DNA of 64,000 bases from Dimorphilus gyrociliatus. Its lineage: Eukaryota > Animalia > Annelida. The translations under genes and the position numbers were made by a program. The notes below the pieces were generated by a model. It was not told the DNA's origin and ran no database searches. It saw nothing but the letters and a program-made list of their open reading frames with translations. The stretch lies in the NCBI GenBank assembly GCA_904063045.1, contig CAJFCJ010000004.1, positions 923,713-987,712 on the forward strand. Direction: 5' to 3'. The stretch's first letter is position 1. Every line of letters starts with the position of its first letter. This document shows, in pieces, positions 1-48,007 of the stretch.

Positions 1-1060
1 TACCCTGGGAAATTAGTGTTATTATTCATAAACCCCAAAATACCGTATCTGTCTTGTGTCAACTTTAAAAGCAAAGGCCAGTTAGGATGCGCATTATTTC
101 ATTTATTCGTTTATGTAAACGCCACCCGCCCCTAATTCGGCTATAGCTCATACCTAATGCGTAGAAAAGGTCAAGATAAGGTTAGGAGCTGTTTTCCTTT
201 GTTTTATAATAACATTTAATGAAAATTCCATCAGTTTGTTACCTTCTAATTAGTTTTTTAGTACCAAATTGCTCAGCTTGTGAGAAAAAATCCATTCCAT
301 GAATCGTTTATTTTAATTTTCCTGTTACGAAATGAATAAATTAACGCACAGTAGGACACTTAAATTCCATATGTGCGTACGCGCGTGTATGTACAAGGTT
401 TTTTTCTCCTTTTATCATTACGATTGATATATATCCAACAGAGAGCTGTCTATTTTTTTTTTATAAGAGAGGTTTTTTGTAACTTTCTCTTTATTTTTTA
501 CGATTTTCATCTTACCTTCAACCCTCCCTCATCCTAAAAAAAAAGCGTAGTACAAAGAATGTTTTCCCCTTCATTTCCCTTTTTTCTAATGAAAAATTCT
601 CTATCCTTCTGTCTGCCTGTCTATCTCTCAGCCTATATTGTTTTTCTCAATCTTTAAAGAAAGTATTGTTTGTTTTTTCTTTTTTGAAGTAAGATTCGGA
701 AAGAAAAATATAGGCAATCGTTTCACTCCGTCGTTTTGCAGATGGGATAAGCTTTAAAGTTGTAATATTTGATCAATAGCACTCTCTACTTTTTATAGTT
801 CTTATCTATAATTAGAATATTAGAAAAGTCAAGATTTTTGTTATCCCTTCGACATTTAAAGATGTGATTTAGTATTGATATATCATACATATTTTAACCT
901 TGATAGCTTTCGTAATTTCCCAGTAAACTCTTGGGAATTAGATGGCTGTCTTGGCCACAATCTGTACGATAATCGATTTATAACTATTAGGCTAAAGGAG
1001 ATTTTCCTTTTGATTTTTGCTTAAAAACTTCAATACTTATTTTTATGTATCCTTAAATAG

Positions 1061-5288: not shown

Positions 5289-6485
5289 TCATTTACCATC
5301 AAATTTTAATAATAGTAAAAATCCTAAAAGTAGAAAGCATGTTTGAAGTGCAAATATTGTAACTCCATTACCTAGAAATTCGAATATTGGTAAACCTCTG
5401 ATTCTATCTAATTCCAAATCTGGAATTTCATCTATACAATCTTTGTCTATTTGCGTTATATTTGGACATTTAATATCGGAGGTACTAAGATCGTTAAATG
5501 AAGTTGGATTTTCTAAATAAGAGAGTAGTTGTCTTGGGGTTATTATAAAAAAGTTTCTATATTGTTTATCCTGTGCTCCTTTACGAAGAAATTCAGCTAT
5601 TCCGTCAACAATCAGTGGTCTTTTTATTAGATCTCTTATATTTAAATGGATTATGAAAGGAGCTCTATTAGTTTCGTTAAATTTTAGGAAATGTTGAAAA
5701 AGTACTTCTACAACATGAGTTTCATTATCAAATTTGCAGTGTTCGATTGTTGCACAAGTTTGTTTAGTTAGATTGTCTTTTATTTCAAAAGCTGGAAATT
5801 CCCATATAGGATAAGACTCTTTTGGACACTTCGGTTTCCAGCATATTTTTCCTTTACACATTGGCATACCACATTCACCAGTTTCCCAGGCTATCGATGT
5901 ATTTAGCTTATAAGGCCATAAAGGTTGATTGAATTTCTTGCTCCAAGGATAGACGGTACTGATATCATAAGAGATATCCATCTCGGATAATGCTTGATAT
6001 TGAGCATCACCACCAATAGCAAAATGGGGCGCTTTTGCTCCTTTGACTTCAACGTTATTTATTATACTTTTTATGTCGTTTAATTCGTCAAACCATTGTT
6101 CTTTTGACGCGTGAACCCAAAATGGAGGGGGCCATATATAAGATTTACTCCCAGCAATTATTTCGTGCCCTCTTATAGCTATATCTTTTAACAGACACTC
6201 ATCAGTCTTTGATCTCGTAACAGCAATAGTAAGTCCAGCCGAACATAAACCTAGGGGTGGTTGATTTCGTCGCCTGGTGGGCATAATTCTTCTTAAAATG
6301 CTATATGATTTGTAGTCGATTTGTCCCTCAACTACAATAGAAATAAATTGTGGCCTATCTTCATCACATATTCTCTTTCCATATAGGCAACATTTATCAT
6401 CTCCCGTACATTTTTCGTGTTTCAAGCTACAATTAAAATTAAATAAAATACAAAAGAAAACGCTTAAAATAAGGATAGGAGACAT
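5289..6485 (-). CDS. Chitin/polysaccharide deacetylase-like (CE4/NodB barrel) protein with signal peptide and C-terminal hydrophobic anchor, probably catalytically inactive
   Basis: Single 398-aa ORF. N-terminal hydrophobic leader; PQFISIV, RGHEI, KGAKAPHFAIGGDAQY, YDIS, LWPYKL, CP..SYPIWEFP and NRAPF match animal CDA-like proteins; C-terminal hydrophobic segment GVTIFALQTCFLLLGFLLLL. Confidence 0.85.
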   Translation of the reverse strand: MSPILILSVFFCILFNFNCSLKHEKCTGDDKCCLYGKRICDEDRPQFISIVVEGQIDYKSYSILRRIMPTRRRNQPPLGLCSAGLTIAVTRSKTDECLLKDIAIRGHEIIAGSKSYIWPPPFWVHASKEQWFDELNDIKSIINNVEVKGAKAPHFAIGGDAQYQALSEMDISYDISTVYPWSKKFNQPLWPYKLNTSIAWETGECGMPMCKGKICWKPKCPKESYPIWEFPAFEIKDNLTKQTCATIEHCKFDNETHVVEVLFQHFLKFNETNRAPFIIHLNIRDLIKRPLIVDGIAEFLRKGAQDKQYRNFFIITPRQLLSYLENPTSFNDLSTSDIKCPNITQIDKDCIDEIPDLELDRIRGLPIFEFLGNGVTIFALQTCFLLLGFLLLLKFDGK

Positions 6486-8412: not shown

Positions 8413-11400
8413 TTATGGTCCGTGATATTCTAAAGGAGGAATCCTTAACATTAATTGAGTATAGCTATCTAATGGATGCGTTGGCATGCTGTTAAAAGAA
8501 AATATAATATTTATTATTATTTATTATATAAGAGTATTGCATTATTATCAGAATATTTAAATTATCGTACTTTTCAGGTTGTAGTGTAGGTGGTGGTGGC
8601 GGCGATATATTTTGAAACAACGTTGAATTGTTATTATTAGTATTATAGGTTGGAGTTGTTTCCATTATGGTTGGTTGATTATCTTGACGTTCGCTAGTTG
8701 TTAAAAAGTTACTAGGTATTGGTTGATCAGACATTTCGGCCGATAGCTTTTGCTGCCTCAACAACCAAACTTGATTAGCCATAACTCTTCTATGTTGACT
8801 AATAAGTCTACATTTTTCGCATTGACAAAACTGATATTTGCAGCTATTCTTGTGATACTTCAAATATGCAATTTCATTATGAGCTTTACATCTCTGACAG
8901 AGAGGCTTTTTTCGGCGCTTTGTCATCCTGATAATAATTAAAATTAAATAATAAAGATGAAAGAATTTATCTCGTAGTTTAACTTACTCTTCGCCATCTA
9001 AGCTATTCGATTCTAGAACTATTCAGTGGGAATAAGAACAAGATTAAAAACCGAATAATAAAATGTTTTCTATGTATATTCATATATACCTGATCCCTCA
9101 TCTTCATTATCAACTGTTAAACAGCTATCAAAGTTTTCTCTCTTCTGTTTCTTTTTCAAAGCCAACTGAGTGATATTTCTTTCAATAATAAGAGAACATT
9201 TAGGACATGTACAATGTTGAAATTGGCATCGCCATTTATGCCCTCGCCTCAATGAGTCAACGCCATGATTCCTACACCTTGAGCATTTAGTTTCCCGTTT
9301 GTAGTTCTTTTCCATATTTTCCGACGAGGAACTGCTACATATAGGAAAATTTTTTAAGACGCAAGTATATTATAGACGATTATATTAATAAAGAGAATAA
9401 AAATATATCAGATATGAATATTCATAGAATTAATGATACGGTACTTGCACGGTCAGTGTTTCTTTCTGAATGCTAATTATTATCTACACATAATTCAGTT
9501 GAGGTAATTAATAATTTCAATATAATTAATTAATATTTAAATTTTCTAAACTTAAACCTATCTTGATAAATTTTCTATCAATTAACTAAATTCGCAGTAT
9601 ACGTTAATATAGTTTTATCGTTAATTTAACAATAAATTTAATAAAATTACAATTTAGAATAATACAGCCTTCAAGGCTATATCAAGGCTCTACCTACATG
9701 TTTTTTTACTATTTACGTTTTCAAGGCTAACTTCATCTATTCAAAAAAAAATGAAATCGTCTGGTGCGCAAAACCGAAGAATTGTCTATGATGAGCAAAT
9801 GTATAGAATTTTTTTTTATAGAAATATATCGGTCGCTTGAATGTTTTTCTACTAATATTATACTCTACTAGTTCAACTAGAACGTAATATTTATTTTAAA
9901 AAATAACATTTCCGACTATCTTAATCTATCAATATTTACTAAGTGAAATATCTTTTCAACGTATAAATCATTAAGTCTATTAAACGTTTGTAGTTAAAAC
10001 AATTGAAAATTAATTAAGATATTTACTTAAGCTAAACAAAACAGTTCGTCCTTCAAATTTCATCTACCTGCCGCAGAGAGAAATGTTTCTCTTAGTGATT
10101 GATTCTAATAAAGAGAATGATAACTGTTGCGCCCTCTCTCCTAATATTGATAATTTATTATTCTTATTTATTTATATAAGCTGATAATTTTTTTAAGTAA
10201 GCTTTTAAAAAAGAAAGAAGACAAATTAATGTAAGTATATGCAATTAGGTCAGGTTATATACACATTATTAAACTGTGATAAAAATAAACTAAGGAGACT
10301 TTACTGTCAAGAACAAGTTCTAAGCGTGTAGGAACTTGTCAAACTATTTCGAGCAGTTTTTTTACTTTCCATTTACTGTTTAAATATATCCTTTCTACTC
10401 CTTACTAGTAATGATAGAATTATAAATACGCTACATTGAGAATTTAAGTTGAGTTAGAGAAAAACTGCAGTTAAGCAGGTTTTTTTTAAAAGAAAAATGA
10501 GAAAAGTTAAAAAAAAAAGAAACTTGAAAGAATCTGATTCAAGATTAATAAAAATGAGATAATTACAATTACCAAAAAATAAAAGGTACAACAATGAAAA
10601 TCAGTAGATTATGAGTTTTTTCGGAAATTGTTACAATTTGTTTTTTTTAGGTATATTTTGTCAAATGTAACACTTTTCCCTTTAATAGTGGCCCTTTTTT
10701 TTCTTTATCATTATTCTCTTCTCTTCTGTATTTTTTACTATCCACATACAAAACCTATTCACCTATTTATACATAAAGTATTTGTATATATGCTAATATA
10801 CTAATAAAATACTGTTTTATATGTAAAATTGTACATGATGTATAAAACATATACTGTATGTTATCATGTATACGTTTTATGAGTTATATTTTATTTGTTT
10901 ATTATACACTTTAATAGTCCCGACACTTGACAAATTTAGAGTAGTTACTACCTTTGTGAATTATTTAAATAGACTTTAAAACGTAAATATTCATTTAAAA
11001 AGTTAAAGATATAGATAAAACCTATATCGAAACTGATAATCGAAAGAGAAGAAGGGAGGAGAGAGATACAAAATAGAAATTGTATAAAAAGTGAATATAA
11101 AGAAAAAGCACACTTCGAAAGAAAGCAGTTTTAGGAGAAAAGTTGAATAGATTGAAAATAGAATTTGTTACTCTTAAACTTGATGAAAGGTTGTTAAATT
11201 AAAATGCTTTTTTTATCGATTTATGTCCAATAAATGAACATTAAAAGTGAAATTGCTTTAAAAAGGTAAACAATTATTAGAAATTAATAATTTCTAATAA
11301 AAAGAGATCTACTTTTTTCTATTGTTGTTTTTTGTTTCTATTTTAGTTTTACATCATTAGTTTTGTTTGTTGTTTAGTTATTTTTAAAATTAGAAGGAAC

Positions 11401-11834
11401 TTGACCATTCAATATCAATTTACTGTTTAATTTTGGCTTATTAAACGATATTATTTATAAAAGCTATTACTTTTTAGGAATAAAGTTTATATAAAATAAT
11501 ATATTATATGATAAATACGATTGGGTAACGTACCTGTCGTTATTGTCCTCGGCGCTGGCTGCTTTACGTAAAAAAGTAGAAATTATTAGTATTCATTAAA
11601 ATATAGATTAATGATATTAAAATTATAATTACATTGGTTGCTAAAATTTTTTTCCTCGTATGAAACAGTTTCTTGTTTTCTTAATGCCAACTGCATGCTT
11701 ATACGTTCAGAGACAATAGCACATTTCGGACAAGCGCAGTACCGAAATGGACAGGTCTTTTTATGTCCTTTGAGACTCCTCTCTCGACCATGATTTCTAC
11801 ACCTTGTACATTTTATTTCTCGCTTTCTTGACAT
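8413..11834 (-). CDS. Dmrt: Doublesex/MAB-3-related transcription factor with three tandem DM domains (predicted 312 aa, 6 exons)
   Basis: Exons 11834-11633, 11561-11534, 9334-9090, 9018-8988, 8927-8571 and 8488-8413, all GT-AG, sum to 939 nt in one open frame. Three complete C-x2-C-x2-H-x8-H-x3-C-x4-C-x-C-x2-C motifs. The DM domains are near certain; joining into a single transcript is predicted. Confidence 0.8.
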
Positions 11835-14219: not shown

Positions 14220-16118
14220 TTACAATTTACAATAACAAATACCTTTCAGTTCCCTATTATTGATGCAATCAGACTGATTACCATACTTATCCAATCGTTC
14301 AAAATTCTCAAGTAGAGTGAATTTCCTTGAATCATAGGAATAGCCTACCATAGCTTCGAAAATTCCAAATGATGGTTTAGCTATAAAAGTAATTACTAAT
14401 TTAGCATACGAACTATCAGTTTTTGATTTTAGTTCATTTTCAGTTAATGGAACGCCATCTTTCAAAGATTTTAGCAGAATAAAAGCTTCAACAGCTCTTG
14501 ATAAAGACATTGTTTTACATACTTTTTTCTTATCGTGTTTTTTGACAAGAGATCTCATTTTTGAAAATGCAAATGATGTAGCTGATCTAACAAGCTTATT
14601 TTCTGTTGATATCTTCATTTGGGTTTTACACAAGCAGTCTCTTTGTCTAAGTGGAGCAGTTTGGCACGTTCTATTATCTGGTATTATATTGAACAATGAC
14701 TCTCCTCTTTTCTTGCCGTGTTTTTCATAATATAACTTCTCGTTATTCAAATTTAATAAATGATATAAAGTTTTATGAATATCAAAATAAGTAGAAAGTT
14801 TCTTTGAATTTAAACGCATATGCTCGTAGTAAGTCGGATACTTTGCTATAAAATCTCTGGGTGGAACTATTATCATAAATGGCAAATGCTCTTCGTATCT
14901 ACCAACGTACGTTTGTCTGAATGTGCCATATCTTAGACCATGATCAGCGTAGAAAAAAAGAAACGAGTTTTTAAAAACATCTCTCTCTTTGATTTCCTGA
15001 AAGAAATGTAAGTAGTCTTTTTCTAAAGCTCCCAGAGTATCTAATCTTGAATGAACTGAAATCGCTTGATGAATATGAGCCCACCATTTTTGATCCTTAT
15101 ATATACTTTGATACTGCAAGACCCAATCGGTAAGAGCTTGGACGTTTGTTTTTTGACCAAAACATAGTGAACTTGGCGACAATTTACCTTTCGACGCTGC
15201 ATCAGTAAAAGGTATTCCCCAATAGTCCATGGGTTGGTTTTTAAAGCCTCTGATAGCCGACTTAAACATAGAAAATTGAGAATCATCTTCGCTAAATAGA
15301 GTCACATAACCTTTATCTGCAAAATCTTGAAATGCAAATCGATATTTATCTAAATAGGGTTTAGAGGAAAAACCCTTCCACTCTTGTACCCATTTACCCC
15401 TAAGCATAACACCAATATTTCCAAGAGTGTAGCCAGCTACTTTGATAAAACCCTCATAATCTATCGCATTTAAATCTTTAAGCAAATAATCGTAAACTTT
15501 CGGCATATATCGTATTAAATTATTTCTAGACGTCGAATCAATTCCGACAAATAATAAATTATAAAGTGAGCTTTGAGATTGATTATACAAGGCCTTGCCT
15601 CTTTTCCAAAATACATTGGTATGATAATTCTCATATAATAAACTAGAATTCCGTTGACAGATAACTTTCAAAAATTCAATTTTTTTCAAAGGAAGAGAGT
15701 AGTTAATCTTTAAATCAATAGGAATTGCTGCACCTAATGAAAATCCAAAATCTGTTTTCGCTTTTCGGGATATTTTATAGTATTTACACACAACACCACG
15801 TGAAATTAAAGCAGTTCGATCGTCTTTAGATATTTTTAAATGCCCATCTTCTACCCATGTGAAATTTTTTAATTTTTGTTTTTTTGTACAATCAGGCCTT
15901 GTCATTGTTGTAAAGTGCTGTTTTGCTATTGGGGAGAATGGAGCAATATACTCCACTTTGCATCCTGTTGTATTTATTAGTAGTCCATCTCTGATATTCA
16001 CTTTTGTTAATAGAGTATTGTAAGAATCATCAATGGTTATTCCGTAATATGTAAAAGTCAATGTCATCAGTGCACTTACAATTATCAGCAGGAAAAGGTG
16101 CAATCTGAAATAGAGCAC
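14220..16118 (-). CDS. DUF229-family protein (alkaline phosphatase/sulfatase-like fold, type II membrane); exact start uncertain
   Basis: 632-aa uninterrupted ORF. N-terminal TM segment, TTGCKV, GIDSTSRNNLIRYMPK, GYVTLFSED, GFKNQPMDYW, FFYADHGLRYGTFRQTYVGRYEEHLPF, RTCQTA, C-terminal CYC. The ORF opens at GTG just after an AG, so an upstream exon is likely. Confidence 0.85.
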   Translation of the reverse strand: MLYFRLHLFLLIIVSALMTLTFTYYGITIDDSYNTLLTKVNIRDGLLINTTGCKVEYIAPFSPIAKQHFTTMTRPDCTKKQKLKNFTWVEDGHLKISKDDRTALISRGVVCKYYKISRKAKTDFGFSLGAAIPIDLKINYSLPLKKIEFLKVICQRNSSLLYENYHTNVFWKRGKALYNQSQSSLYNLLFVGIDSTSRNNLIRYMPKVYDYLLKDLNAIDYEGFIKVAGYTLGNIGVMLRGKWVQEWKGFSSKPYLDKYRFAFQDFADKGYVTLFSEDDSQFSMFKSAIRGFKNQPMDYWGIPFTDAASKGKLSPSSLCFGQKTNVQALTDWVLQYQSIYKDQKWWAHIHQAISVHSRLDTLGALEKDYLHFFQEIKERDVFKNSFLFFYADHGLRYGTFRQTYVGRYEEHLPFMIIVPPRDFIAKYPTYYEHMRLNSKKLSTYFDIHKTLYHLLNLNNEKLYYEKHGKKRGESLFNIIPDNRTCQTAPLRQRDCLCKTQMKISTENKLVRSATSFAFSKMRSLVKKHDKKKVCKTMSLSRAVEAFILLKSLKDGVPLTENELKSKTDSSYAKLVITFIAKPSFGIFEAMVGYSYDSRKFTLLENFERLDKYGNQSDCINNRELKGICYCKL

Positions 16119-32979: not shown

Positions 32980-34296
32980 TTATTCGTTTGTGTCGTTAGT
33001 CCTTTCAAATTGATCACAATTAGCTTCAGTTGATGTTAAGTGATAACCATTTGTCTTTAGCAATCGTTTCTTACACACTCGTAGGCATTTTTTAACTGAA
33101 TCTCTGAACTTCCTATCTGCCACACAGTAAAGTATGCAATTAAAACAAAAGTTTATTCCTTGAATCATGTTCAATATTTGAGAAAGTTTCTTGTTAAGTT
33201 GTTGACTACTTAATCTTTGATCCTTAAATAGATGAAATTTTAGCAAATCCGCCGGGAGAACCAAAATAAATTGTAGAAATATTATTATTACTAATATGAT
33301 TGATATGTAAATAGTATTTCTTTTTGTTGTTTGAGATCCAAATTGTTGCTTTTGCTCCATCCTCATTTTCCGTATAGTTATAAATAGTAAAACATTACAA
33401 CAGATAAGCATCAAATAGGGTAATACTATGAATAGGGCTGGCCAAACTTGATAATGGTATATATCCCTAATAAAAGAATAAGGGATAATGTATCTTTTCG
33501 TAAGTATTGTGAAATGATTATATTGTTTATAGAACTTACCAAGACTTAGTTGATTTTCTCCTGGAATGATCATGATATCTTGGTACAACTCGATAAAGAG
33601 TTGTATTATTCATTTTACATGACTCTATTTTTGCTCTTATGATTTTAGGTATCATAGCTGCACCACATATAATCAACACGAAAATAAAAATCATAATTGA
33701 CTTCTTGGTCGTTAGAAATGAACGGATTTTGATAGGCCAGCTTATCACTAAACATCTTTCCATCGCAACAATTACCGTTATCCATGTACTTAGAGTGAGA
33801 AAGAAGTTAATGGCATGAGTTCCAAAGATATTATAGTATAAAGCAAGCTTAAATTTATAAGGATTGTTCGCATCCATGTTATGAAAATAAACCAATGGTA
33901 TAGTAAATAAATTATAACCAAGATCTGAAACTGCCAAACATAAGAAGCCTAAATTAGCTCTAAACTCCAAATCACCCAGCTTTCCATAATGTAATTTATG
34001 GCCAAATACTGAAATATTTAACGAATTACCAATTATTCCAAGTAAAGCAGAGACTGTTCGTACATAAACTGTCCACACAAAACCAAGATATGAGTAAGAT
34101 TCAATAGCTTTACAATCTCCAGAAAATTTAATCCTATTCAGAAATAATGTTACATCCCTTGCAAAAAGATCATCATATTCATAATCTATATAGAGGTAAT
34201 TATTATTATCAACATTTCTTTAGAATTCTAGTTAAAAGCCAATAATGAAAAAATTTATAGAATGTAGTTACCTGAATAGTTGGCAATATCATTCAT
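32980..34296 (-). CDS. Class A (rhodopsin-like) GPCR, FMRFamide/peptide-receptor-like, 3 exons
   Basis: Exons 34296-34272 (MNDIANYS), 34185-33540 and 33466-32980, with in-phase GT-AG introns of 86 and 73 nt. GIIGNSLN (TM1), LAVSDL (TM2), AMERCLVISWP (ERC), VWPALFIVLPY (TM5), LVLPAD (TM6), INFCFNCILY (TM7), DRKFR (helix 8). Confidence 0.88.
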
Positions 34297-46612: not shown

Positions 46613-48007
46613 ATGGAAAAGTTGGTTGCCACTGCCCAAATATTTTCAAGAAATTTTCATAATGACGACGATTTCATAGATCGTATTAATCACCGATATA
46701 CGACAAGTATTCTTCTTATATTTAGTATGATAGTTTCTACGAAACAATACGTTGGAGAACCAATCAATTGTTGGTGTCCCGCTCATTTTACTACAAGTCA
46801 TGTAGCATATGCGAATTCAGTTTGTTGGGTTAAAAATACTTATTACGTTCCTCCCTCTACATTTCATATAAATAATAACGCACCAAAGAAGATGATTGTC
46901 TATTATCAATGGGTTCCGATGATTCTTCTATGTTTGGGGATGATTTTATACATTCCCCGATTATTTTGGAAAATGATGAACGGTAGATCAGGAATAGAAA
47001 TAAATGATATGGTTGAAGCTGCCAGTGCCTTACAAATAACTAAAAAAGAAGTAAATAGAGAGAGGACTTTACAAACTCTGGTTCAAATTATTCATAGATA
47101 TCTTATGACAAAAACAGAAAGGTATAGACTCGGCTGCAGGGATAGTATTAAACGCTTCTTTAGAATTACTAGCCGTTGCTGTGGAACAAGCTCTGGAAAT
47201 TATTTAGTTTCCATTTTTATTGTTACAAAAATACTATATTCACTTACCAGTATTGGCTTATTCTTCTCTTTAAACTTGTTTTTGGGGAAAAAATTTCATT
47301 TTTACGGAATATTATTCATTAAGGCAATGATGTCTAATTCAGAATATAATACTTCTGACATGTTTCCAACAGTTACCCTTTGCGATTTTGAAATGAGAAC
47401 TCTTAACAATATCCAAGGACATACTTTGCAGTGTGTACTCCCAATTAATTTATTTAATGATAAGATATTTATTTGTATTTGGTTCTGGCTGATTATTTTG
47501 TCAACATTAAATCTATTTAAATTATTGTTCTGGATTTGTGTCATATGTACACAAAAGGAACAAACTAAATTTATAAGGGTTTGTATTCGGACCTTAATTT
47601 CCTTTAATAGTAATTAAAATAGTTTATATTATTATTAGTATTATGAAGATTATTTTTATTGTTAATATTGTTGTTATTATTATTACTTTAAAAGTAGTCA
47701 ACTAGATGGCACTTGTTACATCTTTCTAATATTTTCTACAAATTAACAGGCACAATTGGAGGTTAGTAAAAGAGTTCAGACTAACATGAAGAGGGAAGAC
47801 AACGTGGATATTGTCGATTTCTCAGTCAAACGCTTCAGTGAAGATCATTTACAACAAGACGGCGTTTTAATATTAAAATTAATTGGTTTGAATGCTAATA
47901 AGATCGTGGTTTCAGAGCTAACTGCTGAGCTATTTAGAAACTGGAATACTGCTACTGGTGAAAATTGCAAGCATGCCTCAAATGGTCATCGAGGGAGTGA
48001 CGTTTAG
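46613..48007 (+). CDS. inx: Innexin (invertebrate gap-junction protein), 2 exons, 407 aa
   Basis: Exons 46613-47578 and 47750-48007 (phase 0). DDDFIDRINHRYT, KQYVGEPINCWCP, YANSVCWVKNTYY, YYQWVP, FPTVTLCDF, QCVLPINLFNDKIFICIWFW, QDGVLILKLI. Confidence 0.97.

Follow-up and report, generated by a model that had tools for sequence, protein, structure and literature searches.

DM-domain proteins are the one class of regulators that animals in general employ in sexual differentiation, and on DNA they act as oligomers. The annelid Dimorphilus gyrociliatus combines a 74-Mb genome with extreme dwarf males and a sex that is fixed in the egg. In this study, we examine a stretch of 64,000 nucleotides of its genome (GenBank assembly GCA_904063045.1, contig CAJFCJ010000004.1, positions 923,713 to 987,712; hereafter the window), whose minus strand carries a tandem of three intact DM domains, called DM1, DM2 and DM3 in the order of translation, and we weigh the evidence that one Dmrt-family gene joins all three. 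Genes that carry two DM domains were described from nematodes, malacostracans, spiders, ants and bivalves, and are also known from mites (PMC6604209 and PMC10252143 among the sources).

The closest described systems each share some features with this locus. The group 3 DMRTs of nematodes (MAB-3, DMD-3, DMD-8 as well as DMD-10) contain two adjacent DM domains, not three, and represent a nematode-specific expansion, whereas the domains studied here appear to have arisen by duplication within dinophilids, in a tree that was built without nematode sequences. Malacostracan iDmrt1/iDMY likewise have iterated DM domains and belong to a sexual-development family (PMC10252143), but their domains number two, and the same is true of chelicerate genes such as Parasteatoda Dmrt_like2 (PMC6604209) and of predictions from Tetranychus, Brevipalpus and Araneus. 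Human DMRT1 on DNA (PDB 4YJ0) resembles the array in another respect: DM1 and DM3 align to it at E values of about 1e-12, and the entry has three DMRT1 chains. A joint placement of three DM modules is thus a known arrangement. These chains are separate rather than covalently linked, and three residues are missing from the beginning of the recognition helix in DM1 and DM2. The DNA bound in the DMRT1 complex is a 25-mer (preprint).

An earlier note on this DNA, made from the sequence alone, had raised the possibility that a protein with three DM domains is novel. In the literature, the phrase "three DM domains" is absent from about 8.4 million full texts, and a paper on a three-DM protein was not found. 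Among proteins, the architecture is very rare rather than unique. A profile scan of 1.84 billion protein representatives gave 2606 DM-protein clusters, and among the best 150 of these, 76 had two DM cores and only one, the predicted Nephila pilipes protein GFT29200.1, had three; a mite protein had two complete cores plus a fragment. The spider protein (962 aa) matches the present case in its three complete DM cores, but it comes from an automated, unvalidated 9-kb model in an unrelated lineage, and differs by having three canonical helices and long, uneven linkers.

The three domains of D. gyrociliatus reside in minus-strand open reading frames (ORFs) at 11834-11586, 9315-9070 and 8926-8492. 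Each ORF scores far above the 27-bit gathering cut-off of Pfam DM (PF00751; Table 1), with E values of 1e-14 to 6e-17, and all three domains, both here and in a related dinophilid, have the full set of eight ligands that hold zinc at the intertwined CCHC and HCCC sites (regular expression C..C..H...H...C...C.C..C). In the six-exon model, exons with phases 0/1/2/1/2/2 sum to 939 nt, encoding 312 aa followed by TAA; every junction has GT/AG ends, and the G+C content of the exons is 36-61% versus 14-25% for the introns. The intact motifs, the junctions and the 312-aa frame of the earlier note were thus reproduced at the same coordinates. Two of the acceptors are tandem NAGNAG sites (slashes mark splice junctions): tag/CAG/ at 9334/9331 for exon 3 (site 9331-9336) and aag/CAG/ at 11561/11558 for micro-exon 1 (site 11558-11563). 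The exon 3 leader before the ATG at 9315 is accordingly 19 nt with acceptor 9334 or 16 nt with acceptor 9331, and one-codon isoform variants are possible, with a predicted product of 310-312 aa. The linkers between the DM modules span about 35 residues and are acidic and Ser-rich.

Much of this model is already annotated. The deposited protein DgyrCDS2861 (229 aa, two DM domains), found via ORF3 at 100% identity, is identical to model residues 84-312. It is built from the same exons 3-6, including the 31-nt micro-exon, begins at the internal ATG at 9315, and differs in that it is without DM1 and micro-exon 1. The public annotation of GCA_904063045.1, which combined Augustus, Exonerate and PASA transcripts by EVM (PMC7854359), has no gene between a DUF229 gene and this ATG. 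For comparison, we used Logan contigs of the related dinophilid (runs SRR23372228-31 and SRR31984831/34), whose short ORFs P0011 and P0012 had come from a profile search of 1.84 billion representative proteins. One contig (L003) contains the DM1 ortholog and another (L001) contains DM2, micro-exon, DM3 and last exon; the locus was compared to them as two separate pieces of the window, 12600-10527 and 10488-8000. In the relative, DM3 has no ATG of its own before the domain, and so splicing of more than one DM domain is obligatory at the locus. The relative's counterpart of micro-exon 2 is 28 nt long, likewise ends in DGEE and has a GTAAGT donor. The single spliced three-DM gene of the earlier note therefore stands for the DM2-DM3 join, the 31-nt micro-exon and the last exon, on the public annotation and the ATG-less DM3 of the relative, and for the DM1 join the evidence is comparative. 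The DM1 exon and micro-exon 1 are the parts that the public annotation lacks. The C-terminal motif LMLRIPPLEYHGP (8416-8454, minus strand) comprises the last 13 residues, which are identical in the relative, and follows a poorly conserved tail; it is absent from a paralogous gene described below.

The DM1 exon is conserved as coding sequence. It shares 82% nucleotide identity with its ortholog P0011, with a ratio of nonsynonymous to synonymous substitution rates (dN/dS) of 0.073 at a saturated dS of 1.6; the dN/dS of DM3 is 0.029. The two species are deeply diverged (dS at least 1.6) and their introns are unalignable by blastn, Smith-Waterman or six-frame comparison, and therefore the parts that are conserved are under selection. 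By its substitution pattern, DM1 is a working coding exon under purifying selection and not a relic.

Micro-exon 1 also has a counterpart in the relative: 25 nt long, it lies 85 nt after the DM1 exon, and its splice signals comprise a branch point (CTAAC), a pyrimidine tract and an AG, with GTAAGT as the donor. Within the 1250 nt that follow DM1 in the relative, the 13-mer across the donor of micro-exon 1 recurs once, with 2 mismatches, and it does so at precisely the donor of the 25-nt micro-exon; any match to it was found in only 7 of 5000 shuffles. In D. gyrociliatus, the G+C content of micro-exon 1 is 61% versus 14-23% in its flanks. Both pairs of micro-exons differ by 3 nt between the species (28 versus 25 nt, 31 versus 28 nt). 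Exon 1 and micro-exon 1 together total 230 nt in both species (202+28 and 205+25), and the phase is kept for this reason.

On the receiving side of the proposed join, the similarity between species in exon 3 starts exactly at the acceptor CAG/TTC, and it is the second AG with which the acceptor of the relative lines up. In both species, the 16-nt leader that precedes the DM2 ATG is open in the very frame that micro-exon 1 needs; it reads S-S-S-E-N-M in one and S-L-S-E-T-M in the other, with 4 of 6 substitutions at third codon positions. The conceptual translations have their DM cores beginning at residues 9, 94 and 179 for D. gyrociliatus and at 9, 93 and 177 for the relative, such that their spacing is equal within each species and differs between them (85/85 aa versus 84/84 aa). 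This equality needs a net shortening of the DM1 module by 21 nt here and 18 nt in the relative, and hence is no by-product of duplication. The two introns between a DM exon and its own micro-exon are 71 nt long in D. gyrociliatus; we discarded this match as evidence of duplication, as the corresponding introns of the relative measure 85 and 82 nt, 71 nt is near the genome median and the agreement is probably coincidental.

The relationships of the domains suggest how such an array could have been assembled. In a tree of 54 alignment columns, in which deep nodes are unresolved and which contained no nematode or malacostracan sequence, DM1 is sister to DM2 in both species (support 91/82), and the mite and spider domains group by their own lineage. 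This points to an independent origin of the iterated DM domains of chelicerates (mite, spider) and dinophilids. The relative also has a paralogous two-DM gene (contig L008, 7398-8849), in which a DM2-like domain, one intron and a DM3-like domain (P0158) follow each other without a micro-exon; its DM3 groups with DM3 in the tree (100/98). The linker of this paralog, a Gln-, His- and Pro-rich stretch of about 130 residues, lies in the same exon as the DM2-like domain. An in-frame TAG precedes its ATG by 27 nt and DM1 was not found within 7.4 kb upstream, and because the paralog has two DM domains, this stop and no DM1 upstream, two DM domains would be the older state.

All three domains align to 4YJ0 and 1LPV, but they do so to different extents. 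DM3 is gapless to human DMRT1 (4YJ0) and covers 47 of 47 positions of the Pfam profile, whereas DM1 and DM2 cover only positions 1-41. Compared to DMRT1, DSX and DM3, the recognition helix begins with a deletion of 3 residues in DM1 and DM2 (approximately at 11700-11712 and 9175-9187, minus strand) and in the paralog's DM2-like domain, a deletion which was not seen in any other of the best 150 DM proteins. DM1 and DM2, with their short helix, may have an altered specificity. Membership in the DMRTA subfamily (Dmrt93B / Dmrt99B type) is not indicated, as Pfam finds DM alone in the query protein P0156, whose sequence equals model residues 84-312, and in the three ORFs.

The 2.2-kb interval between micro-exon 1 and exon 3 contains one further conserved element (Table 1); blastn between the two species gave no other longer match on the same strand there. 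Here, AGAGGGCGCAACA is identical in both species, and each has a donor-like CAG/GTA near the aligned place. The motif AGAGGGCGC, allowing at most 1 mismatch, has 6 sites in the window versus 1.2 expected, the others being at 6165, 13466, 24424, 30455 and 31038. In open chromatin of D. gyrociliatus, the commonest motif is CTCF-type and is mostly found at promoters, and long introns often hold open chromatin (PMC7854359). AGAGGGCGC may be the CTCF-type promoter motif of this genome, and the block is a candidate for either an internal promoter with a non-coding first exon, which would serve the annotated isoform with two DM domains, or a regulatory element of the intron. Between DM1 and DM2, a second conserved coding block was not found by blastn, Smith-Waterman or six-frame tblastn, which returned low-complexity matches only.

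Taken together, the comparisons favor a D. gyrociliatus Dmrt-family gene that makes a three-DM isoform by joining DM1 and micro-exon 1 to exon 3, a reading to which we assign a probability of roughly 0.6. Several observations count against it. The public annotation, in which transcripts weigh heavily (PASA/EVM), starts at the DM2 ATG and places nothing at DM1. The proposed intron is 2.2 kb long, compared to a median of 66 bp in a genome with 209 genes per Mb (PMC7854359), and the conserved promoter-like block with its donor-like site lies inside it; given an internal promoter and the donor of the block, the exon 3 acceptor is explicable as a 5' untranslated region acceptor without DM1. A cDNA-derived three-DM ORF is not on record among 5.8 billion protein clusters queried with ORF3, ORF1 and P0156 (the last with a length window of 126-400 aa); all that these queries retrieved was the deposited protein, fragments of genomic ORFs from one related species, and a paralog. 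The relative has its DM1 and DM2 on two non-overlapping contigs, which leaves their linkage there unproven. Moreover, the homologous donor of the relative's DM1 exon (T/GTAAT) was rejected, as together with the micro-exon it creates a TGA, and a second GT 12 nt downstream is required. The tandem acceptors leave some slack in the spacing argument, and frame compatibility by itself is an event of about 1 in 3.

The earlier note had relied on the two micro-exons supplying exactly the shift from phase 1 to phase 2. That shift does fit, but it does not discriminate: between 11633 and 10527, AG/GT ends and the right phase shift are shared by 45 candidate micro-exons, or 90 solutions with the 2 acceptors, and the relative offers 143 frame-restoring solutions. 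The candidate at 11561-11534 stands out from the others by its composition, by splice signals that are the best of the set and by its conservation in a second species. The case for joining DM1 accordingly draws on this conservation, the kept phase, the in-frame leader and the spacing of the cores, and not on the frame argument.

The same observations bear on three other readings of the locus. If there were two transcription units, a small unannotated gene would begin with DM1 and micro-exon 1 and close, within the first 1.4 kb downstream, with a short terminal exon that is not conserved and has a poly(A) site, the annotated two-DM gene would start from a promoter near 10130, and a three-DM protein would not be made. 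The start of the public annotation at 9315, the block with its enriched promoter-type motif and donor-like site between the two units, and the short introns and high gene density of this genome all agree with such an arrangement, as does the paralog, with its upstream stop and no DM1. Short terminal exons that close the frame are also abundant; for example, the AG at 11471-11470 would lead to six codons and a stop. On this account, however, the open joined frame in both species and the equal virtual spacing of DM1-DM2 and DM2-DM3 (85/85, 84/84) are left unexplained, no terminal exon conserved between the species was found, it would be unusual for a protein to consist of a DM domain alone, at about 85 aa, and the annotation pipeline called no separate DM1 gene. 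We consider two units unlikely.

Less likely still is an arrangement of alternative 5' modules, each with its own promoter and each spliced to the DM3 exon at 8927, which would yield proteins of 220 aa (DM1+DM3) and 229 aa (DM2+DM3) and no three-DM product. Exons 3 and 4 do form a symmetric cassette of 276 nt, micro-exon 1 joins exon 5 in frame, both modules are duplicates with the same phases, and in spiders the isoforms of a Dsx2 gene differ in the DM domains that they use (PMC6604209). Against this, exon 3 has a conserved pyrimidine tract and a CAG acceptor where the interspecies similarity starts, which a read-through transcript should use, and one would have to accept both the equal spacing of the DM cores and the in-frame leader as coincidences. 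DM1 could also be a decaying duplicate, or pseudo-exon, with micro-exon 1 a chance product of AT-rich sequence, as its missing annotation and the 90 chance solutions might suggest. The low dN/dS at a saturated dS, the presence in two species of an intact ATG and of all eight zinc ligands, and the conserved donor of the micro-exon speak otherwise; the pseudogene reading of DM1 was rejected on dN/dS, and we regard it as highly improbable.

Under the favored reading of a three-DM isoform, transcription would start upstream of 11834 and the DM1 ATG would be used. Exon 1 would be spliced to the 28-nt micro-exon, then across the 2.2-kb intron to 9334 or 9331, and then to the annotated exons, for a longest product of 311-312 aa. 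DgyrCDS2861 would be a second isoform that starts at an internal promoter within the long intron or, less likely, a model truncated at its 5' end. The gene could have originated from a two-DM ancestor, with a short-helix domain of DM2 type and a canonical domain of DM3 type, by tandem duplication of a module of DM exon, short intron and micro-exon before D. gyrociliatus and the related dinophilid split. In the protein, three evenly pitched DM modules, with cores 85 residues apart, might be placed on neighboring DNA sites in the way that separate DMRT1 chains are in 4YJ0. The product could be a covalently pre-assembled DM trimer, as the earlier note had suggested. A more elaborate version adds a role for two promoters, the upstream one driving the three-DM protein, possibly in a sex- or stage-specific manner missed in female-dominated transcriptomes, and the one near 10130 driving the two-DM protein, with the even pitch of the cores in both species meaning that selection keeps the covalent array for a tripartite DNA site, read much as by three separate DMRT1 chains; we hold this version only tentatively and think it doubtful as a whole.

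If a three-DM isoform is made, this evenly spaced natural array would provide a ready test of how the number and spacing of modules affect the choice of DNA sites, and D. gyrociliatus would be tractable for asking whether males and females differ in their Dmrt isoforms. Even if it is not made, the DgyrCDS2861 model misses a conserved, selected DM exon, and the Dmrt counts for the species need revision.

Table 1. Coordinates of the exons of the three-DM model and of the conserved block in the window (slashes mark splice junctions; residues refer to the 312-aa model)
Feature	Coordinates	Strand	Length	Description	Pfam DM score	Annotation (GCA_904063045.1)
Exon 1	11633..11834	-	202 nt	ATG at 11834; DM domain 1, zinc-binding core residues 9-38; donor CAAT/GTAATT	61.7 bits	unannotated
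Micro-exon 1	11534..11561	-	28 nt (25 nt with tandem acceptor 11558)	predicted acidic, Ser-rich linker; phase 1 to 2; donor ACAG/GTACGT		unannotated
Exon 3	9090..9334	-	245 nt	DM domain 2, core residues 94-123	58.9 bits	annotated ATG at 9315
Micro-exon 2	8988..9018	-	31 nt	linker with DGEE end; phase 1 to 2		within DgyrCDS2861
Exon 5	8571..8927	-	357 nt	DM domain 3, core residues 179-208, canonical recognition helix; low-complexity tail	54.3 bits	
Exon 6	8413..8488	-	76 nt	conserved C-terminal motif ...LMLRIPPLEYHGP, TAA stop		within DgyrCDS2861
Conserved non-coding block	10068..10138	-		motif AGAGGGCGC at 10137-10129, then CAG/GTA about 60 nt on; counterpart at about 686-760 of the relative's contig L001		

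Among the neighboring sequences on the minus strand, a single-exon ORF of 398 aa (5289-6485) is an annotated gene in the public record, and a Pfam match to it was not found. Also on the minus strand, 14220-16118 encodes a DUF229 protein (E 2e-92) and 32980-33588 gives a weak, sub-threshold match to rhodopsin-type G-protein-coupled receptors (7tm_1, 25.7 bits versus a cut-off of 30.5), and on the plus strand, 46613-47617 encodes an innexin (E 2e-84); these three are unrelated to the Dmrt locus.

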